NCBI RefSeq assembly: GCF_001194135.2
Contig: NC_068987.1
Coordinates: forward strand, 81,159,635-81,223,634
Direction of reading: 5' to 3'
Length of the DNA stretch: 64,000 nucleotides
Source: Octopus bimaculoides
Taxonomy: Eukaryota
The notes under the pieces are model-generated. The model was not told the origin of the DNA. It saw only the letters and a program-made list of their open reading frames with translations, and did not search any database. Shown here piece by piece: positions 2,553 to 54,270 of the stretch; the stretch's first letter is position 1; each line of letters opens with the position of its first letter. A program made the translations under genes and the position numbers.

Positions 2553-2639
2553 CTCTCAACATCTAAAGGTTGCATTGCTGGAGATTTACAATTCCATGAT
2601 GCAAATGGAAATTTTATATGTTGCAAGAATACAAAATCT
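2553..2639 (+). CDS. SPO11: Meiotic recombination protein SPO11, internal exon (LSTSKGCIAGDLQFHDANGNFICCKNTKS)
   Basis: ttttAG acceptor, GTAAGT donor, 87 nt, phase 0-0. Matches the human SPO11 segment LSTSKGLIAGNLRYIEEDG in motif and length as recalled. Confidence 0.92.
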
Positions 2640-4049
2640 GTAAGTTAGATATTTTAATTCTTTTGTTTTCATTGAATTTATTATTCATGATAGTTTGCCA
2701 TTCTTTTTACTAAGCTATCATATGCTGGAAAAAACTTCTCAGTGTCATATTTTCATGCTTCTGTTTCACGTTGACTCATGTAGAAAGTTCTAAATTTCTT
2801 TCTCCTGATCTAATTACCTCATCCAAACTTCTTTGTGCTTTAGGTACCTCTTTTCTGTCTCTCTACTATTTTCTCCTATTATTCCATATATATATTTTTC
2901 AACCAGCTTAATATTCATTAACAGAACTAGAGAATTATGTTATACACAATGATCAATGTGAGTGTGTTCATTCAGTTTACTTCATTACATATCACTTATA
3001 TTATTTCTCTATAAACTTGAATTCCTTTGTATTCCTTTCTTCTTCTGAAGTTCCCACATTAGATTCTTTAGCAAAACCCAGCCATCTAATTAATGAAGCT
3101 AACTTGCAATCTATTTTTGAGTTAATTTTTAAAGGGCTCAATCTTGAGAGTGAATGAAAGAGCTCAAAGTCAAAACTTCGGCAGTGACATACTTTAAATT
3201 TCATTCAGCACATATACTAAATCTCAACTCTACTTAATATGTGCCATACATGCCTCCTGTTCGGTATCCATTCATACATATCATACCAAAGACCATGGGA
3301 ATCGACCAAAAATTCTTTTTTCCGCAGTTTCTTTCACCTGAAAAACAGCATCAATGATACAAAAACCAAACTACTTTACATCCACTTCATCTCTGTTATA
3401 GCTTTTTTTATTATTCTTTCTACTTAGTGTATTTGATAGATTAGTTTTTCTCTGTTAAAAATATCCCTTTCTATGACACTACTATTTCTTTTTTTTTTTT
3501 GTGATTAGTAATCATACTCCTATTGTCAGTTGTAGAAGATAAGATCTTCCTGCATAATTTGATTATTGAGTTAAGTAATAGTGTAACTTCCACCCAACCC
3601 AATGCCTTCATTGCCCTAGCAATAATAAAAGGAAGTTTTTGAGCTTTCCTTATCTTCCTTAATACATTATGTTCACAGAAATATATTTACTTCTTTCAAA
3701 CAGTACTTTTATTTTATTTTGTATTATTTATCTGCTAAGTTTTATTTAATAATAACATTTATAGATATGATATTGATATTATTGCACTTTGATTTTACAC
3801 ACATGAACACCACATACACAAACTTCTATTAATCTATGTACACACAGGAATTTATTTGTTAGTTTGGAGATATATCCAATACTTAAAGAGTTTCTAGACC
3901 CTCTAAAGACTTAAAAATATTGATTATTGTGGCTGAGATTGAGTATTAATTGTTGCATCTTAGTAGTTAAATTGCAAACAATTTTTTTTGTTCAAGTGAA
4001 GGAGGAGGGTCAGAGCCAATAAACAGTACATATTTTTCAAAACTAATCA

Positions 4050-5900
4050 TGTTGATGTGGGTGATTTTAACAGAGACCTCTGTAGGTTGACAACTTATGC
4101 AAAACGTGAAGAGGAAGAGATATACATAGGCTTTCAATTCTTAGATGGAAGGATTTGCTGAAACTATTTAATTCATATCTTAGGGACTGAGAGTCATTGA
4201 TAAGATTTGGATAGATAAGTGTGTTTACAGATAGTTTAAATCAGCAGGAACCATAACTACATCTGTTGAAGAACCAGTGAGCAGCATGTTGGTGATTGAT
4301 GGTTTTCTTCCAGTTAGACAGATGGTGATTTTAGTAGATGCTGTGTAGAATGTGTGTAGCAGCTGTACTATCCTGTTATGTGAGTAACACTGAAACTTTA
4401 ATGTGTAGTGACTTAACAACTGTTTAGATCTGAAGAATTATTTGTCCAAGAAGGCAGCTTTAATAGTGTTATAGCTGTGTAGGTGCCATCAAAGATCCTT
4501 GAGGATTATCATATATAGAGTAAAGACTGAATACTTTAATTATGTGTTTACTACATGCTTCTTTTATATATGCAGTAATTCTGTGTTATATTTTTGATGA
4601 AGACTAAATTACCATCTTCATTGGAGGATGTTTTATTGATTTGTTAGTAATCTGTGGTATTTAGGCAACATGACACTTGTGTACAGAACAAGAATGAGTG
4701 AAAAATGATGCCATCTGTGCAGAATGTAACAGGGAGTGTTATAACTGATGTAGACAGATGGCAATTTGGAAGAAATAGTTGAATTTTGAAACACAAAGGA
4801 AGTGATCGATTGTGAGTTGGAGAGAGCCAGTTGACACTTAGTACAAAGAAGTGTTCTGATAAGAAACTTCTTAACCAAACAATGAGACAGTAGTAGAGTC
4901 TATAGAATGGAAACATCATCCAGGGGCTTCTCTTGGCAGTGGGTAGTATCATTACTTTTCCTGGTGCTTTTATTGTTAAGAGAACATTATACCATGGCAC
5001 AATGAGCAAATCTCCAGTAGGTTTGGTTCTACGGAAGCTAAAAGATTCAGTTTAATAAGGAGGTGGTTATTTCCATTGTATTTGAGGTGTTGAGAGTCAA
5101 GATAGCAGTCGACAGAGCTAGTGAGATTTAGGCTTGACATACTGTGACACATTTCCATAAACCACATAGGTCTCCATGGAGAAGACAAAAAGCCTGAGAA
5201 TTTGGTGAAGTGTTAGCTTGGAAAAACACTGTGAGAAGATGATGACAATGACACTATCAGGACTAGATTCCTTCTTTTGGCTGACAATATGGTAGAAACA
5301 CTTGACGGTAGTGTGAATATGGTGGTGAGATATGTGAGACTAAGAAAAATTTATGAAGGGTTTTGTGTGTGTTGCTAGATTAGAATTGGGAATTAGATGT
5401 GTTGCAAATGGGGTGTACTTATCAGTTAAAATACTGCTTACAGAGACACCTTGTGATGGGCTGGTAGATTCTACAAAAGAGAGACCATCTTGACCAGGGA
5501 AGAGAAAACACTATCATAATAGAGGAGATGAGTTTGCAAGTATTTCAGTGCACAAAATCCGTTTTTAGTAAGTTGATAGACATCTTGTACACATTGCAGT
5601 GGTGACTTCATAATTGGAAAGTAGATTTCTTTTGGGTGTTGCTGGCAGGGTTTTTCACTTACACCACTGTGAGTGAACTACTTTGCCTATCCCACTATGA
5701 ATGAAATTGTGTGGATATGGCTTCAGTCATCTAGTTACATGTACCAGGGATGAAACCTATTTGCTTCCAGAGGTATAGGAGAGGGGAAAAGGTTGAGCAC
5801 TTAACAATAAGCTGAATTGAATTACTAAAAAGTTTAATGAACATTGGTTGTTCCGTGATAGATTGATATGGAGCAGGAAGATATAATTAGGCAGTAATCA
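4050..5900 (-). mobile_element. Highly degraded CR1/L2-group LINE (endonuclease/RT remnants)
   Basis: Broken minus-strand frames with RT-like fragments (KAPGK, FNRCSYGSC resembling the FYRY..G.CS C-terminal motif); many stops and frameshifts. Boundaries approximate. Confidence 0.45.
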
Positions 5901-6416
5901 GATGATTGTATGTGCATGGGGAGATGTAGGATAGAATAATGCTTGGGTTCAGAAGTATGTCAATAATTAAGGATGTTTAGAGATCATCTGAAATTCTGAA
6001 AATTGAAAAGATCCAAAAACCAATACTTTTTCTTTGAGATCATCTGCAAACCAAAGCCTGTGTTTGGTACCAAACATGACTTAAAAGTAAAAAGTATGCA
6101 AACAATTTTATGTTCTGTCCTTATTCCACTTCATTTACCAGTTTATTGCAATCCAAACAAACTATAATATTTAAAGTCTTTATTTATCCCACTCAGAGTG
6201 AATATTCATAATGCAAATGAACAATAATGAGAAATACGGTTGCTAGGCTATATTTACATACCTTTACTTGGAGTTTTGCATTTAGGTGTCTTGTTTAGTA
6301 TGTATTTTTACATTACCCTAAGCTAATGAATGATATTTTCTTTATAATTATGGTAAGTTGGTAAAATCACCCACATGCTCCACTTGGCTAAGACTATCAA
6401 TGTACTCTAATGGTAT

Positions 6417-7877
6417 TGTGGTGATGACCTGGAAGAAGAGGGCCATGACGTCAATGGTCAAGGGACTGACTGGAAGAGGACGCGTGAGAAGGGAAGTGCG
6501 GGGGGTGGGGGTGGCAGGACAGGGTCATCCTCTTTTTGGCCAGCCAAGGCATTGCAAACGGACATGAGGGAATTTGCTCTTGGCTTGGTGAGACAGCAGC
6601 TGCTTATACTGGGTAACAGAGTAGGGCAGGACCTCCAGAGTGACTACTACTAGATGGGCACAGATGAGAGGGGAAGGTAGATGAACCTCTTTTCATTTCC
6701 CATGTGTGACAAGTTATTTTGGTAATTGTATACAGACGTCATTGTCCCCTTGATATGATGGCAGCGAAGATAAGGATGTCATCAGACCTTTCTTTGGCGA
6801 AAGTCACGTAGTAGCCTGGGTTTGAAAGGTCAAAGTTGTGGCCAGGCTACAAGGCAGCGAAGATGTAGCGAGCCTCATGGCTCTGTATTTGGAGGGGAGT
6901 GCACTGGCACTGTACCTCAAAATGGATGAAGAAGAACAGTTGAGTGTGGTGAAGATCAAGCAGCACTTGAGAAGGCTTACACAGATGGAGATTATGCTGC
7001 CTTTGCTAAGCTGAGAATGTTCAGATGGAGAGGGGAACAGGTCGACGAATATGTTGTGGAGGTATGGAGGCTGGTTGTATTGTCTGGTCTTACCGGTGAG
7101 GGACTTAAGAAAGTAACGCGACTGACTTTTGTGAACAGATTTCCTGATGACATGTCAGTGCGACTACAACAGTTGCTTGGTGGCAACAAAATGGCGATGA
7201 GCGAGCTCATCGTTCAAGCCCATGTGTTGACACAAAACACCGGGTGGAAGGTGGTAATGGTGGCACCCAAGTAAACCATTGAGATGCCCTGTAGAAGAGA
7301 GACGGCCCTACTTCGTGGAGGTGGGAGATGAAGTCTGAGTCAAGCTACCAAAGGCACGCTGCACAACTCAGTGGAACAGAGCAATAGTGATGGCTGTCAA
7401 TTCCAAAAACAACATCTCTGTGGATGGAATGCCACGTCATGTCTTGGATGTTCATAGGATAGTCACTTTGTCGGATGATGATTGCGGAGAAGAGGAAGAG
7501 AATGAGGTTCCCAGTTTAAGAAGATCATAATGTGCAAGGTGCTCACCCAGGTGGGTGGTAGATTTTGACATGGAGTGAAGTGAGATTGGGGGGCATGTGG
7601 GGATGAGCTGGAAGACGAGAACCCTGACTTCAACGGTCAAGGGACTGACTAGAAGAGGAAGCATGAGAAGGGAAGTGCAAGGGAGAGAGGACTCTCTTTG
7701 GCTGGCTGAAGCATCGCAAATGGATGTGAGGGAATTCACTCTGAGGTTTGTGAGATAGCAGCTGCTTATTCTGGGTAATAGGGTAGGGCAGGATCGCCGG
7801 AGTGACTACTACTAGATGGATGGGTGCAGATGAGAGAGGAAGATAGGTGAACCTCTTTTCATTTCCCATGCATGACA
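6417..7877 (+). mobile_element. Internally deleted (gag-only) Ty3/Gypsy-type LTR retrotransposon
   Basis: LTR1 6417-6711 and LTR2 7596-7877, both TG...CA and clearly homologous. 5-bp TSD GGTAT (6412-6416, 7878-7882). Purine tract before LTR2. Degenerate gag (VVAWV*KVKVVARLQ...LYLEGSALALYL...TFVNRFPDDMSVRLQQ) is joined directly to an integrase C-terminal tail (VGDEV*VKLPKARCTTQWNR...SVDGMPRHVLD). Confidence 0.9.
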
Positions 7878-8839
7878 GGTATCCTTATAGTCATAAAACT
7901 TTAGTTCAACCTATAATAGATACATACAAATCAGAATTTTGTTTCAAAGTTTGGTGGGATTGAACTAGGCTCTTCTTGGGATCTAAAACGAGGGCTATAG
8001 TGGAAGACTCTTACCAACTTCAAGCAACAAGCTATGAAATCCTTACAATCTCTCAGTTTCCTGTAATTCAGACCACCTCATGGTCCTGGCAGACAAAACT
8101 GAAATGGCATTGCTCTGGAGGATAACAAAAGAGATGCGGTTGAACAGCCACTCTGATTCATGGGACTTGCACTTGCAGACAACCATCTCTGCCCTGATAG
8201 CAGTGAGCAGAAATATGGTCTAGGGACTGAGTACACTGGAGGTCTCCACTGCCACAAGCTCAACCATAAATCTGTATGTGAGCAACCAATACTTTGACAG
8301 TTTGCTCTTCTTGACCTAACAAGCAAACATACTATTTTCCAAATCCGAAAAATTCTGAAACATTCCTAGTTCCAAGGATTTCTGGGAAGAGATCATATAC
8401 CTCTATTTATATCCAAGCTGGTCTTCATTGAGCAGATCTATTATCAAAGACCTTAAAGCTATGGCCATCATATATTTTGAAATTTCTAGAATATAGTTTG
8501 TGAGAGATTTGATAGTTGAAAGATTTCAGAAGGCAATGGAAATACATCAACTGATGGAAAACATTTCTACTTGGAGCAAATGACATTTTTCATTGTGGAT
8601 TTTCAGGTATCAATGAATTGTGGGGAGAATAGATTATATGTAAGCACTGATGTCATATAGAAAGAACTTCTGTAACAATGCAAATTTGAAAAGGCATGAT
8701 TGGAAAACCGTGTGTAGTACAGGTTCTAGAAGATAAAACATTGAAGTAGCGACAGTTAGTGATACAAAAGCATTAAACACTTAAGCTGAAGGGTATTGAG
8801 ACAGATTATGGTGTTATACAGTGTGTATGTTTATACCAT

Positions 8840-9790
8840 GTTTACTATGGATTTACTCTGTTGGAAACTTTAGTTTAAATTGAAGTCAATCCATAGATTT
8901 TAACCATCACTGCATGTATAAACTAGTTAAATTAATTAGATATTAAGGACAGTCATAAAATGACTGCCATGTTTAAACAATCTAATTGTGAATAGAAAGA
9001 GGTTAGTTGGGCTACTGTTTCAAACATGTTTATATTCTCATCAGCAACTTCTAATCCTATACTTAAATGACCAATGAAATTGTATTTAAAACCACTATAC
9101 ACAAATTTGAATATTTGACACATTTTTGGCAGTTTGACTAGCTCAATTTCTGATGTGTTAAGCAATGTTTTCTTACTAAAGTTTACTATGTGCTAAATCC
9201 ATAGATCTTGCATTGCATGTGTAAACTAATTAAAATTAGATACATTGGACAGTCATAAAGGGGTTGTCATGCTGTTATAGTTTCACTGTTGACAGAAGGG
9301 AGATTGGCTGTATGTACATGATACTTGTTTACAACCATCTAATGTATCCAATTTTAATTAGTTTACACATACTGTGATAGTTAAAATCTATGGATTTATA
9401 CATAGTTGACTTTAGAATAAAAACAAACACTGCTAATATGTCATTATCTTATTTAGTTGAACAAACTGGCAAAGATGCAACAAATGTTGAAATTAGTGTT
9501 CCTGGTTTAATAAAGTGCCTGTTAATAGTATCTTTAAATACAATTTCACAGTGATCAGTTAAGAGTATAATAAGTAGTTACCAAAGAGAAAGTAAATACA
9601 TTTGAACTTACAGTTGAGCAGATCCCCCTTTTGTTGCCCATAGTGAGATTGTATAAACATAACAGCTTCTTATGACTAATCAAGGGCATATACAGTGATA
9701 GTTAAAACTCTATGAATTCACTCGGCATCAATTTTTAGTATGTAAAAATAATGCATTACTAGTATAAACACTAGTAATGCATTATTAAAG
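8840..9790. repeat. Fold-back-like region: two direct and two inverted copies of a ~60-bp motif plus a perfect terminal hairpin
   Basis: Motif AATCCATAGATTTTAAC.ATCAC.G.ATGT.TAAACTA.TTAAA at ~8889 (+), ~9196 (+), ~9338-9398 (-) and partially ~9688-9720 (-). 17-bp perfect stem 9747-9763/9770-9786. Confidence 0.6.
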
Positions 9791-9842
9791 TGTGTAGAAT
9801 TTATATAGCTTGGAAATATTTTGTAGTATTTTTAATTTCTGA

Positions 9843-10048
9843 CCTTCGTGCTGGTGGCACGTAAAAGCACCCACTACACTCTTGGAGTGGTTGGCATTAG
9901 GAAGGGCATCCAGCTGTAGAAACTCTGCCAAATCAGATTGGAGCCTGGTGTAGCCATCTGGTTTCACCAGTCCTCAGTCAAATCGTCCAACCCATGCTAG
10001 CATGGAAAGCGGACGTTAAACGACGACGATGATGATGATGATGATGAT
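9843..10048 (+). mobile_element. 5'-truncated RTE LINE 3' end (or RTE-tailed SINE) with (GAT)n tail
   Basis: Repeated motif GGTTGGCATTAGGAAGGGCATCCAGCTGTAGAAA...CCATGCTAGCATGGAAAGCGGACGTTAAACGATGAT. The same sequence is contiguous with RTE ORF remnants at 14735-15610 and 25308-26530. Confidence 0.85.
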
Positions 10049-10592
10049 TCTCAGTTTTTGCTGTCCTGTTTTAGTGATTTTAGTATATGTGATGTTGATG
10101 AGAGTCTTGGGGATTAGGTTAAGCATTTGTCAAGAATATATTTAGAGTTGTATGTTATTAATAAGTGGAGTGGAATGGATGTTGAGTTATACCTTTTATT
10201 TAGAGTTACTCTGCCTTAATGCTGATGCATAAAACTATATCATTATTGGAAGATAATCTGGACATCATTATTCAAGGTGTATTGAAGTTACATCTTCATA
10301 CAAAAGTATAATACTTTTATGCACAGCCTAGTTTGCTTGGATACTAATATATTAGTTTTGTCCTAGATTATAGGATTTAGATGTGTGCTTACTATATCTA
10401 ACATATGAATATATTTTACCATAGATACACAGCATCCTTGTATTTAGTAATAAGTAAATAAAACAGTTGGTAACAAGAAGGGCATCTTACTATAAAGCAC
10501 TGCCTCAGAAAACCTGCCTGACTGACACCAGAATGGGAAAGTGAACATAGAATACTGCTTATACTGAGGATACTTACATGTACATGCGCGCG

Positions 10593-10634
<42 letters not shown>

Positions 10635-10987
10635 TATACAGTTGTGCTATAAAATTATTGCTATTTTGTTTATAAATGAAATATACTTTATGACAAAATA
10701 TTGAGATCTAGCCTCAACTATTGTTTCTCATATGAGGCATATATTTCTGCTTTGAGGGTAAGTATCCAGCTTTAAATAATTTATTACGGCAGTAAGAAAT
10801 GTTTGTAAGTTTTCAGCATATATCACATGCTTCCATGGAAAATAATTTTAAAATATTCACAGCTCTTCTAATTTAAATTTTATATTTTTGTGTTATACTG
10901 AATGATACATTAAACCTGTTGATGTGTAAATTGCATTCTATTATCACTGATAATGCATTATGTACACATGATCTATTTTTCTTTTAG

Positions 10988-11024
10988 GGCATCATGCTGC
11001 CATCAAATGTTATGGAAATTAACA
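10988..11024 (+). CDS. SPO11: SPO11 internal micro-exon (GIMLPSNVMEIN + A), 37 nt
   Basis: ttttAG acceptor; PSN motif and 37-nt length correspond to human AVAVPSNIQGIR(N); in frame with the previous exon; followed by GTATCCTTT. Confidence 0.88.
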
Positions 11025-12430
11025 GTATCCTTTATATAGCAAAAGTTCAGAAACTTAATTAATTGATGCATAAAGAGTACTGAAAAAATAAATGAAATTA
11101 GGAAAAATATACCGTACTTTCTGGCATGCAAGTTCATTAAGTGTAAAATGCAAATGTTCAAACGTTGTAACTATCTTTCCAAATCCTGCTGTATGTCACA
11201 TGGAAGTTTTAGTCTTCAAAAGTTGTCTTGGTGTATAAGTCAATCTATCTTTTTTGGCTCTAAATTTTGGATGAAAATATTCAACTTGTGTGCAGGAAAA
11301 TACAGTCAACAAGAATAGTTACCAATTATTGAATAGAAAATCAGTGTATAAGACGCACAAAAATACTTTCATTTTTATTGTATTTAGTATAATCATCATA
11401 ATCGTCATCGTTTAACGTCTGCTTTCCATGCTGGCATGGGTTGGACGGTTTGACTAAGGGCTGGCAAGCCAGAAGACTGCACCAGGCTCCAATCTGATCT
11501 GGCAAAGTTCCTACAGCTGGATGCCCTTCCTAATGCCAACCACTGTGAGAGTAGTGGGTGCGTTTTACATGCCACCAGCACGAGGGCCAGTCAGGTGGTA
11601 CTGGCAAAACTCCTCAATAATTTCTGAGATTGCCTTTAGGATACAAATTTATTGGAGAGGTATACTGACAATTGAGTGAACAATAGTACTTGATTATCTT
11701 ATTGCTCTTGGAGAGATGAAAGACAAATATTTGAACTTAAAAGGTAGAGGATTAAAACTTATTAATATGGTATTCCACTGGTGCTTTTCTCTTTCTGTTC
11801 TAGCAAAATTTAGTGGAAACTTAATAAAAGTAAAATATCATTAAGTTTGAGAACCTAAATATTTGATAGGTGCAAAGTTAATTTAATTATTAATAGCTGA
11901 GATCTGACTAGTGTTTCGAAAGGATATTACTAAACTAAGAGCCTGAGTTACTGGAAAACAACAAGTATTACTTGTTGCATCTGTATGCAGATGAGTTGTA
12001 CCTAATCATATACTTGCCTACGTTTTAAAATTTTAATAGTCTCCAACTACTTTTTCTCAACATCTTGGGAGAGTTGAGTGATTCCAGGTGAACTATCACA
12101 TGCAATCAATCCATTCAATCTTAATTCTAAGTTGCCAAAAAGGCACTCATTGGATCTAATTTCATAAGCAAAACGTAACTCACAATGATATGTCTCCATA
12201 TATTTATTTATCCAATAACAGTTACCTTTCCTTATTTTCATTTCATGTCTATGATATTTTGCCCTATGAAATGAATTAGTAAAACAGGCTTTAAAGCACT
12301 ATTTCCCAGAGAATGAATAGATAAATAAAAAATAAAATTCCATCTTTATTTTGTGATTTTGTTCAGTCTAATTTGTCATTTCATATAGTTGCAATTCTGA
12401 AAATTTTATTTATCCTTAATGCATATTTAT
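11025..12430 (+). other. SPO11: U12-type (minor spliceosome) intron of SPO11, predicted GT-AT termini
   Basis: Donor GTATCCTTT (11025-11033) equals the U12 consensus. Branch point TCCTTAAT at 12413-12420. The homology-defined exon start at 12431 is preceded by AT, 11 nt after the branch A. Confidence 0.8.
11391..11607 (-). mobile_element. RTE 3'-end repeat copy
   Basis: Reverse-complement match to 9843-10048 with a (CAT)n-like tail at the left end. Confidence 0.85.
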
Positions 12431-12537
12431 ACATATATACTCATGCCCTATTTATTTTAGTAGTGGAAAAGGATGCTACATTTCAACATCTGTTAAATTA
12501 TGGAATCAGTGACCAATTTCCTTATATAATTATAACT
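12431..12537 (+). CDS. SPO11: SPO11 internal exon, start of TOPRIM domain ((N)IYTHALFILVVEKDATFQHLLNYGISDQFPYIIIT)
   Basis: Conserved VEKDATFQ motif with the catalytic Glu; GTAAGT donor at 12538; frame continuous with flanking exons. The 5' boundary is inferred from alignment to human (N)LVTDAKFVLIVEK. Confidence 0.92.
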
Positions 12538-12909
12538 GTAAGTACTTAAAAAAACTGAATAATGTAAATTTTAACTGTGAAATCTCAATAAATCCTGTAG
12601 AACTGTAAGTTAAATCAACTAACAAGGCAATGTTATACACGGTATCAAATGAACTGAATTCTTGATTAGTGTAGATTAGTAGTTTATGAATTTAGGATTA
12701 CAAAAATGAAAGCAAAAAATTATTCATCAATGATAGGATAAGTGAAATTTTGAAGATGCTTTAATGAAGACTAGAATCCACACTGCATTAGCATGAAAAG
12801 TGGATAAAAAATTATGATAGTAGTGATGATGCTGATGATAACAATGATAATGATGACCAAGGTTTGACTTGTCAAAATTAGTCTGGTTGTTCAGTTGACA
12901 ATATCTTAA

Positions 12910-14734: not shown

Positions 14735-15610
14735 ATCATCATCATCATCATAATCATCATCATCATAATCCTCATCATTTAATGTCCGTTGTCCATGCTG
14801 GTATGGGTTGAATGGTTTGAACAGAGCTGGGGAGCTGCACCAAGCTCCAGTCTGATTTGGCATGGTTTCTACGACTGGATGCCTTTCCTACTGCCAACCA
14901 CTTTACAGAGTGTGCTGGGTGTTTTCACATGGCACCACATTAGCGCTTTTATGTGGCACTGGCATGTGTGGATTTTATGGGCTTTGGCACAGAATTCTTG
15001 CCAACCAATCCTCTTCACCAGGGAGAGCAGCCTTAACACTTCTGTTGTGGAATATGGGTCTTCTTGAGTATAGCAAGGTGCCAAGTATCTCAGTCCTTTG
15101 TCATCTTGTCTGAAAGGTTCAGTATCCCAAGATCATCCTTCAGTACTTTTTTCCATGTCTTCCTAAGTCTCCCTCTTCCATGGGTTCCATCTACTTCAAG
15201 AGATCGGCACTTCTTTATGAAGCTGTTGGCATCCATCCACATCACATGACCAAACCATCACAGTCTTCTATCTTGCACGCTGCATCTAATTCCTCTTATG
15301 TCTAACTTCTCTCTCAACGTACACTTACATTACACATCCAGTGGAGCATACTAGCCTCATTTCTCTTTAATCTTTGCATGTCCTCTACAGTCAGGGCCTA
15401 CATCTTCCTACCATGTAGAATTGCTGTCAGTTTACATGTATCATACAATCTTCTTTTCATTCAGAGGAGGGAGAAAGCTTTCATAGCCAACAAAGACAAA
15501 AGCTCTCTGAATTTCCTCCATATTATTCTTATTCTCACAATCACACTCTCTGTGCATCCTCCCCCACTACTAATTTGGTCCCCTAGGTAGCAGAAATTAT
15601 CTACTACCTC
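14735..15610 (-). mobile_element. RTE-clade LINE, 5'-truncated (RT C-terminus + 3' UTR + tail)
   Basis: Minus-strand translation VVDNFCYLGDQISSGGGC...WRKFRELL...WFGHVMWM...GRGRLRKTW; runs into the repeated 3' UTR and (GAT)n tail. Confidence 0.9.
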
Positions 15611-17431: not shown

Positions 17432-17902
17432 NNNNNNNNNNNNNNNNNNNNNNNNNNNNNNNNNNNNNNNNNNNNNNNNNNNNNNNNNNNNNNNNNNNNN
17501 NNNNNNNNNNNNNNNNNNNNNNNNNNNNNNNNNNNNNNNNNNNNNNNNNNNNNNNNNNNNNNNNNNNNNNNNNNNNNNNNNNNNNNNNNNNNNNNNNNNN
17601 NNNNNNNNNNNNNNNNNNNNNNNNNNNNNNNNNNNNNNNNNNNNNNNNNNNNNNNNNNNNATTAAACACAACCAATCTACTCTGTAAGATATATGCAAAA
17701 CTTGAGTTGGTTGGTTTTCTGTGTTGCTGTGTGAGCAAGTGACAACTCGTCCAACTCATGTCAGCATAGAATGATGAATGTAAAATGGAGATGGTATATG
17801 TGTGTGCATGTATATACATACATGAACTTGATACATACATATTTATATATATACATACATACATATGTATATATGTGTGTGTGTATGTGTCTGTGTGTGT
17901 AT

Positions 17903-21858: not shown

Positions 21859-22582
21859 NNNNNNNNNNNNNNNNNNNNNNNNNNNNNNNNNNNNNNNNNN
21901 NNNNNNNNNNNNNNNNNNNNNNNNNNNNNNNNNNNNNNNNNNNNNNNNNNNNNNNNNNNNNNNNNNNNNNNNNNNNNNNNNNNNNNNNNNNNNNNNNNNN
22001 NNNNNNNNNNNNNNNNNNNNNNNNNNNNNNNNNNNNNNNNNNNNNNNNNNNNNNNNNNNNNNNNNNNNNNNNNNNNNNNNNNNNNNNNNNNNNNNNNNNN
22101 NNNNNNNNNNNNNNNNNNNNNNNNNNNNNNNNNNNNNNNNNNNNNNNNNNNNNNNNNNNNNNNNNNNNNNNNNNNNNNNNNNNNNNNNNNNNNNNNNNNN
22201 NNNNNNNNNNNNNNNNNNNNNNNNNNNNNNNNNNNNNNNNNNNNNNNNNNNNNNNNNNNNNNNNNNNNNNNNNNNNNNNNNNNNNNNNNNNNNNNNNNNN
22301 NNNNNNNNNNNNNNNNNNNNNNNNNNNNNNNNNNNNNNNNNNNNNNNNNNNNNNNNNNNNNNNNNNNNNNNNNNNNNNNNNNNNNNNNNNNNNNNNNNNN
22401 NNNNNNNNNNNNNNNNNNNNNNNNNNNNNNNNNNNNNNNNNNNNNNNNNNNNNNNNNNNNNNNNNNNNNNNNNNNNNNNNNNNNNNNNNNNNNNNNNNNN
22501 NNNNNNNNNNNNNNNNNNNNNNNNNNNNNNNNNNNNNNNNNNNNNNNNNNNNNNNNNNNNNNNNNNNNNNNNNNNNNNNNTA

Positions 22583-22743
22583 TATGAAAGTCGAATCTCG
22601 TCAGAGGTAGTTTAAGATATACAAAATAGGTGTTCAGTTCTTGCATGTCAAGTATACAGCTGCAAACCGATGGTTTGCATCCATATACTCAACTCAGCAT
22701 TTTGTATATCTTAAACTACCTCTGACAAGAATCGACTTTCAAA
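22583..22743. repeat. Palindromic MITE-like element
   Basis: 42-bp inverted arms 22586-22627 and 22699-22740 (40/42 match); inner perfect hairpin TGCAAACC-gat-GGTTTGCA 22661-22679; TA on both flanks. Confidence 0.75.
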
Positions 22744-26569: not shown

Positions 26570-26872
26570 TGGAGGCAGTGACAAGTGACCAAGACATTTG
26601 ACAATGCACCCTGCTTGTGTAGAGCTGTCAAGCCAAGTGAGACCATAGTCATGGCTGACGCCGGTGTCAGATCAATAGCACCTGTGCTGGTGGCACATAA
26701 AAAACACCCACTGCACTCCTGGAATGGTTGGCATTAGGAAGGGCATCCAACTGTAGAAATCTTGTCAAATCAAATCAGAACCTGGTGCAGCCCCCTGGCT
26801 TACCAGTTTTCAGTCAAACTAACCAACCCGTGACAGCATGGAAAGTGGATGTTAAATGATGATGATGATGAT
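26570..26872 (+). mobile_element. RTE 3'-end repeat copy
   Basis: Matches the repeat family and ends in TAAATGATGATGATGAT. Confidence 0.85.
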
Positions 26873-34812: not shown

Positions 34813-34912
34813 GGTAAAGGATTTCCAGATATTAATACACGTTTGCTTTTGAAAACTTTATGGAATGAACTCCGCATTCCTGTATTTGGCTTAATGGATG
34901 CTGATGCTCATG
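34813..34912 (+). CDS. SPO11: SPO11 internal exon, TOPRIM domain (GKGFPDINTRLLLKTLWNELRIPVFGLMDADAH + G)
   Basis: ttttaaAG acceptor, GTAAGT donor, 100 nt; conserved GKG.PD..TR and DxD motifs. Confidence 0.95.
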
Positions 34913-47461: not shown

Positions 47462-48275
47462 GTGGAAATTGTGAGCACTGCTTACTTGCAGCTAGAACAT
47501 GACTTTAAGACAAGGAGTTGCACATACTCCCTAGTATCGTCCAACACTACCAGAGATTTTGGAGTAATTGATAACAATCTAAGCTGGAGTTCCCACTTAA
47601 ACAGCAAGGTTAACTTGGCCCACAAGGTGTGCTCCTGGATCCTGAGAACTTTCTGGTCTAGAGATGCCTACACCATCATCCTTTTCTACTCTACTTTTGC
47701 CCAACTCCACCTTGAGTACTGTTGCCCACTGTGGTCTCCCCATACAAAGCAACTCATTTTGAAAGTGGAAGCACTCCAGAGGTCAATAACAAGAAAGATA
47801 GATGGCATGAGATGGGGTCAACTAAAAAAACTCAACCTCTCCTCTCTCCAACGCTGCCAGGAGCACTACATCATTTGTGTGATGTGGAAAATATTCCATC
47901 AATATTGCACAAATGATGTTGGTATCAATTTTAAAATCCATCCAAGATTTGGTCCCTGTGCTATCAGCCCCCAACAAAGATCAAATTCAGGACACATTAC
48001 ATCACAACTACTTTACCTCTACCGGTCCAGCTCTCTTTAATACCATACCAAAATGCATCAAAACGGAAATGGATCGCTTAAAATTCAAAAGTTCACTGGA
48101 AAAAATTTCTTTAAAAAATCCTAAACCAACCTCCTACACCCAGATATGTCTCCACCAATAATAACTCTTTGCTAGAGTGGGCCATGGTGCCCCATATATG
48201 ATGAAAAGACTTCACCAGGTGGTGCTATTGAGTTAGACATGGCCTGGGCCTATACTGGCCGAAACCTATCAAAGT
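47462..48275 (+). mobile_element. CR1-group LINE 3' fragment (RT C-terminus and 3' end)
   Basis: ORF with LHLEYCCPLWSPHTKQLILKVEALQRSITRKI and DFGVIDNNLSWSSHL; frameshifted downstream (GPALFNTIPK). Confidence 0.85.
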
Positions 48276-48467: not shown

Positions 48468-48504
<37 letters not shown>

Positions 48505-48904
48505 CATATATACACATATGTATTNNNNNNNNNNNNNNNNNNNNNNNNNNNNNNNNNNNNNNNNNNNNNNNNNNNNNNNNNNNNNNNNNNNNNNNNNNNN
48601 NNNNNNNNNNNNNNNNNNNNNNNNNNNNNNNNNNNNNNNNNNNNNNNNNNNNNNNNNNNNNNNNNNNNNNNNNNNNNNNNNNNNNNNNNNNNNNNNNNNN
48701 NNNNNNNNNNNNNNNNNNNNNNNNNNNNNNNNNNNNNNNNNNNNNNNNNNNNNNNNNNNNNNNNNNNNNNNNNNNNNNNNNNNNNNNNNNNNNNNNNNNN
48801 NNNNNNNNNNNNNNNNNNNNNNNNNNNNNNNNNNNNNNNNNNNNNNNNNNNNNNNNNNNNNNNNNNNNNNNNNNNNNNNNNNNNNNNNNNNNNNNNNNNN
48901 NNNN

Positions 48905-50290: not shown

Positions 50291-52269
50291 CAATCTTCTA
50301 TCAAAACATGTCCAGCCATTGTGCTGATCTTGTTTAAAGGATGAGGGGAATTATATCTTGCTTGAAAAAATGGGGGTTGTCATTGCAAGAAGCATCTGGA
50401 CATAGAAAAAAGCTACCTCAATGGATTTAGACTAGCCCATGCTAGCATAGAGAAGTGAAAGTTAAAATGATGATGATGGTGTAGATGAAGTCCTGAAGTA
50501 AGCAAGAATATTATAAAGTAAAATATCATGTCTCTTTTTAAATGCATTATTTTATGACTCAAGGTTGTCTAATAACTCTTTAGTTTCCTGTATTAGATTA
50601 AGAGCATCCGTTTCTCTGATATACATAAAAGATGTACCATCTTGGGTACAACCTTATCATATGGTTTAACACTCCCACTTAGCTTTCGTGTACCTTCAAC
50701 AGGGTCATTCTGTGGTAAGTATTTTAGACTAGATTCCCAGTCTGGGGATAACTGGATGTATTGATGTTCTGCTTCCTATTGTTATGAGTTATGGTTTCAT
50801 GATCACTTTTCCCCCAGTAATATTGGGGTCACTGTAGAAAGCATCCTTCTCCCTTTGATTAAAACATTAACAATAAGAGAAAATGTAACTACTGTTCAAA
50901 TATTTTCTTATGTTGAATGGTAATTTCCATAAGCCATTATCTCATTGTGGTTTTACTCAAAGCTTTTTTACTCATGTATTATGTCAAGTGATTTTATTTC
51001 CACTCTAAGATATAAACAAGAGTTGAATTCATTATAAGAAACTAATGAAGTAGTCATCAATTTTACAGTATCACAATTATAATATGGTACTTAAAAATCA
51101 ATAAGATTGAGAATATGTTTGAAAAAACATTTCAAAAACCTTACAACTTTACCCAAATTATAATTTTATTTAATTGCCTGTAGTTATTAGTGCACTGGGT
51201 TATGTTACTGAATAGTTAAATAATAATCTTGACTGGGTGAGACTATGTAAAGATACAATCTAATACATATTCTGTAAGTTCAATCTATATGGAACACTTA
51301 AAATAGTTGAAGCTTTTCTAAAACTTACGTGCGTTTTATTGTTATTATTATCTTTATTCTAGTGAGGGAGCTGTGTCACTTCATTGGATGAGAGCATTTT
51401 GACTACAGACATATTACAATACCTGTAATCAAATAGAATTTGTCAACCTTTTTGGTGGACGGTCACCTTCAAGGTGACTTGGCTTCCTAGGCTGTCTTAC
51501 TCTATCTGATGTGAGTGGTAAAAATACTTTGGCATCTGATTTTATATTTAGATTTTCTATATACCTGCCAGATTAGAAGCAAATATTTAAAGATATTAAT
51601 TCATCAGTAACCATGTGGATGCCCCCTCATTAGATATGTGTGTATTTACATGTACATAGATGGCTTGAAGGTAGGAGTTTGTTTGCAGGACGTGCATGTC
51701 CATGTATGTAAATGTGTCCATCCATATGTGGTTCTGTAAGCATATCTTTACGTGTTTACATGTTTGTGTATGATTGTACAGAATGATATTAAATGCAATT
51801 ATTATTTATTGGCTAATTTTGGAATATAATGTGAATATAATAACATTCTGTGTTTTATATAGCTTTGTTTATGGTTGCTGAATCACTGAAAGAATAGTTT
51901 TCGGGTTTCAAACTGATACAACAATGTCAAGGTACACTGTCATAATTTAGGTAAGATAATCTAAGATGTGAATAGTAAATATTATCTGTGTGCACAGTTT
52001 CATAAAACAAGGCAACATATTTCCACAGAAATATGCAAGCTTGTGTCTATACCTGTCCATAGCAAGCTTGTGTCTATACCTGTCCAATGTGTGTGTGTGT
52101 GTGAATGTAGTGCATAAATAGGGCTGATTTAAGTTTCACGTGACACAAAGCATTATTCAGTTAAAGAGAATTTGAGTGAAGGTTTCACTTGGAATCATTC
52201 TATACAACATATTGACTATTTTTAGTTTTGTGATTGTGGCCACTTATGTATTATAAATGCTAAAAGCTT

Positions 52270-52417
52270 CTTTCATTTTCTGTCTGTCACATCCACTCAT
52301 AAGAAGACACTTGCCTGTAGAGTGGGACTGAACTTCGAACCACAGGAATTTTGGATTCAGTCCCACTGTGTGCCATCTTAGGCAGTAGTTGGGAACACTT
52401 ACCCACACAGCCACTCG
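52270..52417 (-). mobile_element. CORE-type SINE head, degraded
   Basis: TCCACTCATAAGAAGACACTTGCC...GGGACTGAAC...CCACACAGCCACTC. Confidence 0.6.
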
Positions 52418-52467
52418 TGTGTGTGTGTGTGTGTGTGTGTGTCTGTGTGTGTTTGTGTGTGTGTGTT

Positions 52468-52513
<46 letters not shown>

Positions 52514-52809
52514 TGTGTAGATAGTTAGATAAATAGATATATAAATAAAGAGATATATAGAAAATTTATTGCTACATCTTTCTTATGATTTCAGGTTGGA
52601 GTTTGGGAATTTGCACAGTATAATCTTCAGTGAATTTATGCAGTAGCTGAGGATTATATATATATATATTGATTCCCAAGTTGTATTTGTTTGCCAAGTG
52701 ATTTCATTTGGGATAATTTTCGAGAATAGTCATACTATGTATGTAAAGTGTATGTAAAACTTACGTACACTGTTACATTCATGTTTGATGCCATAATTTC
52801 AAAATAATT

Positions 52810-52970
52810 ATTTCAAATTTTGTTAAAAGATCAACAGTTTTAGGAGGAGGGATTTAGTTGATTACACTGACTTCAGTACTTAACTAGTACTTCATTTTAT
52901 AAACCTCAAACGGATGAAAGGCAAAGTTAACCCCAGTATGGTTTGATCTCAGAACATAAAGAACTAGAAA
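52810..52970 (-). mobile_element. Second SINE family, partial copy
   Basis: GGATGAAAGGCAAAGTTAACC...TTTGATCTCAGAACATAAAG matches 42660-42877. Confidence 0.65.
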
Positions 52971-53149
52971 AAAAATTCCACAAAAACAGCTCATTCTTTC
53001 AGTTTACCTGTTCTTTCAAAATAATAATAAAATATTCTATATCACCATATTTGGGCAATTATCTTCTACCGTGGCCTCTTGTGGGTGGAATTGGGTTCAT
53101 GAAAATTATGCAGTGCTTAAATGCTATCACCATTTTTTTAGATATCTAT

Positions 53150-54270
53150 CTTCGATGCTGGCATGGATTGGATGGTTTGACAGGATCTGAGGGGTTAGAG
53201 GATTGCATCATGCCTCGATGTCTACTTTGGAATGGCTTCTATAGCTGCATGCCCTTCTTAAGGCCAACCACTTTACAGAGTTTGTTGAGTGCTCTTTTTG
53301 TTATATAAGCATTGTAGATGTCACTACTTAGCTCATGTGACTAAAATCCCCATCAACTGAGTGGTGCTGCTGTGGAGAGGGAGATAGCTTTATGTCAGAT
53401 GATGAAAGGTTAGAGTCTGAAAGAAGAAGATGGAACAGGATTTTTTTGCTGTAGAGGAGAGACATGGCTTCTCACATTACACAAGAATCAGTGAGAGTAA
53501 TCAGTGTGAAGCTGGGAAGCGAAATAAAGATAGTGGTGACAAGGTATGTGAGGGTGGGCCCTGGAGCAGAAGAAAAGGAAGGAAGACTGCATGGAGGTAG
53601 TTAGAATGTATAGAGAGAGTGAGGGATAGTTAGTGATGGAATAGGGTTGAAAATCTACTGAATGGTGAAGGGTCAAGAAGACGGGGCATGTTGGTGATAA
53701 GTATGAGTTGTTTGGAAGGCAGGAGAGAATAGATGATGACTAGGAATTGGAAAATGTGAAGTAGTGAATGTAGTGAATGGTGGAGGAGAAATGAAGGGCA
53801 CATCTGAGCTGGAAGGAGAAGGTTGGGGGATTAGGTGATTATTAGAAGTACAGGAAAGTGAAGAGTAACAGGATAGAGGAAAGATATAAGGTGTAAATAG
53901 GTAGGTTGCAAGAGTGTGAGTGGAGACAAAAACTTAGTGCATGGGGAGAGTGAGAGATGTATAGTTATATGAGCAAATGAACAGGAAGGGTTCAGTGGAA
54001 AGAGAGGAGATCTACTTTGGAAGATTAGAAAGTAGGGTGATCAATGTAAAATGTGAGTGAAGAGGGACAATGAATGAGGGAAGTCAAGTAAAGGGGTTCC
54101 AGATTGTTAGAAAGATAACTGGTATCAGAAAAGGTGATTAAATATGTGCTTCTACTCTCGTTGAGTAACAGCTGCAGAATATTGCAGTTAGTCAAGTGAT
54201 GGAGAGATCAGTGATTGAGAGTGAGGATTGGGAGGGAAGCTTCAATAAAGAAAATAGGTTAGGGCCCCAC
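53150..54270 (-). mobile_element. RTE 3'-end copy (53150-53340) adjoining a purine-rich CR1/L2-like 3' region
   Basis: RTE UTR motif at left; ~900-bp strongly purine-skewed tract similar in character to 13840-14170 and (inverted) 34110-34420. Confidence 0.45.

Follow-up and report, generated by a model that had tools for sequence, protein, structure and literature searches.

SPO11 exons in the window

The window, by which we mean the whole 64-kb stretch of octopus DNA that was analysed, contains a portion of a SPO11/topoisomerase-VI-A gene, encoded on the + strand and split by very long introns (Table 1). The 37-nt exon is preceded by a canonical ttcttttAG and ends in ...ATTAACA. An assembled RNA contig of run X27 ran past 12537 into GGTAAAGGATTTCCAGATATTAATACACG / GGTAAAGGATTT at 34813 and, in the upstream direction, into the exon end at 2639, where it read ...TTTATATGTTGCAAGAATACAAAATCT|GG. 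Because this contig spans exons on both sides, it represents a normally spliced SPO11 mRNA, and the neighbouring introns are GT-AG. The likely 5′ end of the upstream exon was placed solely from the AG at 2551-2552, and the likely 3′ end of the last exon in Table 1 from the GTAAGT that follows it. The flanking GT-AG introns measured 8.3 kb (2640-10987) and 22.3 kb (12538-34812), and the intron between them 1.4 kb. The 37-nt exon is a micro-exon lying between a U2-type acceptor and a U12-type donor.

A reading made earlier from the letters alone (the sequence-only reading) had assigned the locus to SPO11, and protein comparisons bore out this assignment. The spliced peptide matched the Pfam family PF21180 (TOP6A-Spo11 Toprim) with 79.4 bits (E=4e-22) and was aligned with the PDB entries of TopoVIA (2zbk, E=1.7e-11) and yeast Spo11 (8urq, E=3e-5). 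Of the Toprim domain, both the DxD region and the VEKD stretch with its conserved acidic Glu are present. The description of VEKD as catalytic was loose: the stretch is there, but its Glu binds metal in the Toprim domain, whereas catalysis depends on a Tyr that another part of the gene encodes. Alignment with M. jannaschii TopoVIA (IPNDVTKL-NLETDADFILAIE) crossed the 11024/12431 junction unbroken, so the ten residues that depend on the choice of acceptor are conserved structure and not intron.

At 34888-34912 the octopus protein reads DADAHG, whereas archaeal TopoVIA and human SPO11 read DADP(Y/H)G, a change of Pro to Ala in the Toprim DxDxxG motif region. A tblastn search located no winged-helix (5Y-CAP) exon with the catalytic tyrosine within the window; this exon probably lies upstream of base 1 or inside the gap-containing first 2.5 kb. 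One tblastn match, 'CQPFW' at 51441, was rejected as a SPO11 exon since it looks spurious.

Table 1. Coordinates of SPO11 exons, splice signals and the intronic repeat (positions within the window)
Feature	Position	Strand	Evidence
Upstream SPO11 exon (LSTSKGCIAGDLQFHDANGNFICCKNTKS), followed by GTAAGT	2553..2639	+	tblastn and sequence
37-nt SPO11 exon (GIMLPSNVMEIN and first base of an Asn codon)	10988..11024	+	RNA contigs, 8 runs
Intron of 1,406 nt, ends GT..AT, of U12 type by its motifs	11025..12430	+	Joints in RNA contigs, 8 runs
U12-type 5′ splice site GTATCCTTT	11025..11033	+	Directly at the RNA-defined exon end
SINE-like dispersed repeat in the intron; passenger, no part of the splice signals	11392..11607	.	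Word depth
U12-type branch-point sequence TCCTTAAT	12413..12420	+	Sequence motif; branch A presumed 12419 (or 12418)
Non-canonical 3′ terminal dinucleotide AT	12429..12430	+	Sequence and independent DNA assembly
107-nt SPO11 exon (Asn completed, then IYTHALFILVVEKDATFQHLLNYGISDQFPYIIIT), followed by GTAAGT	12431..12537	+	RNA contigs; aligns to the Toprim domain start
First downstream AG, within the exon	12459..12460	+	Acceptor use seen in no listed contig
Next SPO11 exon (GKGFPDINTRLLLKTLWNELRIPVFGLMDADAH and first base of the following codon)	34813..34912	+	X27 contig, tblastn

Splice signals of the 1.4-kb intron

An intron of the U12 (minor-spliceosome) type is marked by a 5′ site matching RTATCCTT directly at the exon end and by a branch-point sequence about 10-15 nt before the 3′ splice site. 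The donor GTATCCTTT agreed with the U12 GT-class consensus at 9/9 positions and was poor as a U2 donor, and the branch motif TCCTTAAT matched the U12 consensus (TCCTTAAC-like) at 7/8 positions. The final T of the branch motif would presumably form a G-U wobble with U12. The last base of the intron lies 11 nt from A12419, the second A of the branch site and the probable branch adenosine, or 12 nt from A12418. The spacer GCATATTTAT (12421-12430) is 10 nt long, ends in AT and is 60% pyrimidine, so that no strong polypyrimidine tract precedes the 3′ splice site. The donor, the branch motif and the terminal AT all lay where the sequence-only reading had placed them, and its statement that no AG separates the branch point from the exon start was correct, the spacer being AG-free. 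The termini GT..AT are neither AT-AC nor GT-AG, but correspond to a documented non-canonical GT-AT subtype of U12 introns; the unusual terminal pair therefore does not bar the intron from the U12 type.

As bare strings, these motifs are within chance. GTATCCTTT occurred once in the 64 kb against 0.74 expected, and TCCTTAAY seven times against 6.5 expected. What is beyond chance is their placement, one at an RNA-proven exon end and the other 11 nt before an RNA-proven exon start.

We also compared the possible exon starts by translation. Start 12431 kept the frame (...EIN-NIYTHALFILVVEKDATFQ / ...EIN-NIYTHALFILVVEKDATFQHLL), with the joint in phase 1 inside the Asn codon, and the spliced product regained "NIYTHALFILVVEKD", with which the Toprim domain of TopoVIA/Spo11 begins. 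An AC at 12431-12432 immediately follows the AT of the intron; a start after it, at 12433, was shifted into stop codons. A start at 12461, after the AG in Table 1, was in frame but gave EINIVEKD, shorter by 10 residues, and the Pfam score fell from 79.4 to 73.3 bits. Starts 12425 and 12437 were likewise in frame, and each likewise follows an AT. The frame-preserving start at 12431 after AT, 11 nt from the branch A, the frameshift caused by the AC and the cost of the in-frame AG had all been anticipated from the letters, and translation gave the same outcome in each case.

The same signals bear on the possibility that the major spliceosome removes the intron, which would then be of the U2 type with non-canonical GT-AT ends, as in the conserved example of DGCR2. 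U2-type GT-AT introns are known (Sheth et al. 2006), and the first bases of the intron are indeed GT. However, the donor (ACA|GTATCC) lacks both the +5G of U2 donors and an exon-end G, and the acceptor, with its 10-nt spacer of 60% pyrimidine, has neither a polypyrimidine tract nor an AG. The near-perfect U12 branch-point sequence at a U12-typical distance also argues against a U2-type intron, as does the vertebrate SPO11 intron with the identical donor 9-mer, which is classed as minor. We therefore consider a U2-type origin very improbable.

Spliced RNA across the intron

RNA runs were found by a search with the exon alone, and the junctions were read from assembled contigs. In contigs of eight public RNA runs with four species labels (X1 and X2 from organism A; X4 and X26 from organism B; X25 from organism E; X27-X29 from organism F), position 11024 was joined to 12431, skipping 1406 nt with the ends GT..AT and without positional ambiguity (both=0). 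The depth of contigs with this joint reached 103.7. The X27 contig read ...ATTAACA|ACATATATACTCATGCC at the junction, that is, ...ATTAACA followed directly by ACATATATACTCATGCCCTATTTATTTTAG. The joint predicted by the sequence-only reading was thus the sole joint over this intron among the contigs of the eight runs. That reading had proposed a comparison of 12431 with 12425, 12437 and 12461, and none of the listed contigs joined 11024 to any of these three positions; since contigs drop rare variants, a minor isoform through one of them is possible. In the raw reads of runs X12-X14 (2026, the species of the window; about 6% of each read), zero reads fell on SPO11 exons, and SINE reads were the only ones found.

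We also considered whether the AG at 12459-12460 is the main acceptor, giving a GT-AG intron; the 12431 joint would then come from a minor isoform, or have arisen artificially during assembly or reverse transcription. This AG is canonical and in frame, and isoform ratios are not derivable from contigs. Nevertheless, only the 11024 to 12431 joint was assembled in eight independent runs from four species, and the 41 nt that separate the branch A from this AG exceed the usual U12 distance. Its use would also remove conserved Toprim residues, with the lower Pfam score given above. The joint has no micro-homology, which makes template switching unlikely; no sequence is shared at the joint, and template switching was rejected as its source. 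In view of these points, the AG at 12459-12460 is very unlikely to be the main acceptor, slightly more so than a U2-type origin. A-to-I RNA editing was rejected as an explanation because it cannot make AG from AT.

One contig of X29 was wholly intronic (11759-12307), with a depth of 3.68 compared to 103.7 for the spliced mRNA contig, and X27 contained a similar intronic contig at 12140-12301. These intronic contigs probably reflect unspliced precursor or retention of the minor intron.

Reliability of the DNA and related species

DNA of organism A, the species of the window, was also assembled independently from run X7; over 11578-12560 the result was identical to the window apart from position 12191. 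Organisms B, C and D all keep the branch-point sequence, the end of the spacer and the AT in their DNA contigs, against a divergence of about 4% from the window in the rest of the intron. For the donor, organisms B and C showed no listed change; two mismatches of organism B in 10930-11110 were unlocated, and organism D had no contig there. The conservation is shallow because the four species are close relatives (4-5% intron divergence); it shows that the signals are fixed, and not that they are deeply conserved. The sole change in the branch-to-acceptor region of any sister species is A>G at spacer position 12425 in organism C.

A sequencing or assembly error, with a true genomic AG or AC in place of the AT, might be suspected in a draft with several N gaps, but it is refuted by the independent run of the same species and by the AT in three other species, and the RNA exon begins with ACATAT, which fixes the cut whatever the last bases of the intron are.

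A more distant orthologue was found in L001, a Logan contig of ERR12370324. It is known from DNA alone, and the donor lies off the contig. L001 reads ...ACCTTAAC ATTTTACCTAG|AT ATC CAT ACC AGA GCA ACA TTC ATT TTA GTT GTT GAG AAA GAT. It has the same exon (IHTRATFILVVEKDATFQHLLNYG) as octopus, interrupted at the same codon position, and about 11 nt ahead of this point a U12-like branch site, ACCTTAAC; its intron, however, ends in a canonical AG. As the AG stands at the same codon position, the comparison of the two DNAs suggests that the AT was derived from AG in the octopus-type lineage.

Comparison with known minor introns

GT-AT has been listed among the non-canonical U12 introns (4 in human and 3 in mouse, some of them conserved), and experiments cited in the same study found that GT-AT introns were spliced productively (Sheth et al. 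2006). It is also listed among the conserved animal minor termini by Larue and Roy, who found 83% of human minor introns conserved in octopus. Many conserved minor introns have been reported in Octopus sinensis and molluscs. The intron described here resembles the catalogued GT-AT U12-type introns, such as those of human and mouse DEADC1 and SLC24A6, in combining a U12 donor and branch-point sequence with a 3′ terminal AT, and differs from them in gene and phylum. In the animal GT-AT consensus of Larue and Roy, position -1 from the 3′ splice site is A; in octopus the AT follows a T (TTTAT|AC).

In mammals, SPO11 is already counted among the minor-intron genes. The supplementary tables of MIDB give the donor GGA|GTATCCTTT and branch-point sequence TCAGCCTTAACT for the human SPO11 minor intron, and AGC|GTATCCTTT and TCAGCCTTAACA for that of mouse; the MIDB branch-point sequence for the human/mouse SPO11 minor intron is GCCTTAAC. 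The vertebrate intron (human ENST00000371263, 342 nt; mouse ENSMUST00000050442, 299 nt) thus lies in the same gene as the octopus intron, and the two share an identical donor 9-mer and a CCTTAAC-type branch-point sequence. The octopus intron differs in its length of 1,406 nt and in carrying a SINE; it ends in AT. The human exon-end bases GGA would probably fit a phase-1 cut at ...IR|N-LVTDAKF, parallel to ...IN|N-IYTHALF in octopus. Taken together, the octopus intron is likely to be orthologous to the vertebrate SPO11 minor intron.

Interpretation of the GT-AT intron

We conclude that 11025-12430 is very probably a U12-type SPO11 intron with the rare GT-AT terminal pair, which, to judge by its motifs, would be removed by the U12 spliceosome. 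In the mechanism that we propose, U11 would recognise the donor, and U12 would pair with the branch-point sequence, leaving the A at 12419 bulged. Distance from the branch site, some 11-12 nt, would then place the 3′ cut at TAT|AC, despite the lack of an in-frame AG or AC there. This would join 11024 to 12431 in phase 1 of the Asn codon and retain the first Toprim beta-strand (FILVVEKD).

The proposal of the sequence-only reading, a rare GT-AT U12 intron, holds: the GT-AT ends were confirmed by the RNA joint and the U12 type is supported by the motifs, while the category itself had already been catalogued (Sheth et al. 2006). The octopus intron adds to a known rare subtype, in a gene with a known vertebrate minor intron, and is not a new category.

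A 2026 paper describes SPO11 as having only major introns outside chordates. The octopus locus contradicts this statement as a counter-example, since here a protostome SPO11 has a minor intron whose donor 9-mer equals the mammalian one. It is plausible that the non-canonical 3′ end is the reason why the minor intron of octopus SPO11 was missed, and the case suggests that non-canonical termini may lead to under-counting in cross-phylum surveys of minor introns. A gene predictor that accepts only AG would drop 10 Toprim residues or break the frame, and automated annotation may thus mis-model the intron, as the sequence-only reading proposed. The finding provides a correct gene model for a key meiotic enzyme, and its value lies in annotation and comparative work. 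It also offers a natural GT-AT intron, verified by RNA, whose 3′ site evidently depends on how far it lies from the branch point. Together with L001, a relative that has AG in this position, it amounts to a natural experiment, on a small scale, in the switching of subtypes.

A wider reading is improbable, although worth stating: the SPO11 minor intron might be ancestral to bilaterians and not restricted to chordates, the octopus lineage might have changed AG to AT and fixed it across species, and the weakened, distance-defined acceptor of such a slow minor intron might act as a dosage or timing gate on the meiotic break enzyme.

Repeats, gaps and other features of the window

In DNA runs of four species, the word depth of the SINE-like repeat of the intron ran into the millions, and its abundance in RNA runs was also very high. 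The window holds about ten further, diverged copies, e.g. at 9839-10039, 14759-14937 and 26681-26872. A second intronic element at 11118-11285 was moderately repeated, with a word depth in the thousands compared to about 10 for the single-copy flanks, and had no second copy in the window. Scanning the window with Rfam gave 0 hits, with no snRNA gene among the results, and the scans for tRNAs and tandem repeats were equally empty.

Assembly gaps (N runs) were present at about 690-1250, 17500-17750, 21860-22600 and 48480-48900, with long X stretches in the list of open reading frames (ORFs), and any SPO11 exons inside these gaps are therefore invisible. An ORF on the - strand at 682-1467, starting with MFGPGTTNERTAQWWFKKFRSGDESLEDDKRSGWPS, was interrupted by a gap; by eye, we take it to resemble the N-terminal DNA-binding part of a mariner/Tc1-type transposase. 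A 192-aa ORF on the + strand at 47462-48040 contained ...LHLEYCCPLWSPHTKQLILKVEALQRSITRKI... and presumably corresponds to the C-terminal end of the reverse-transcriptase ORF of a LINE. The segments 4001-8000 and 52001-54000 showed a markedly positive GC skew of 0.24-0.33 and a GC content of 0.37-0.44, above the rest of the AT-rich window.
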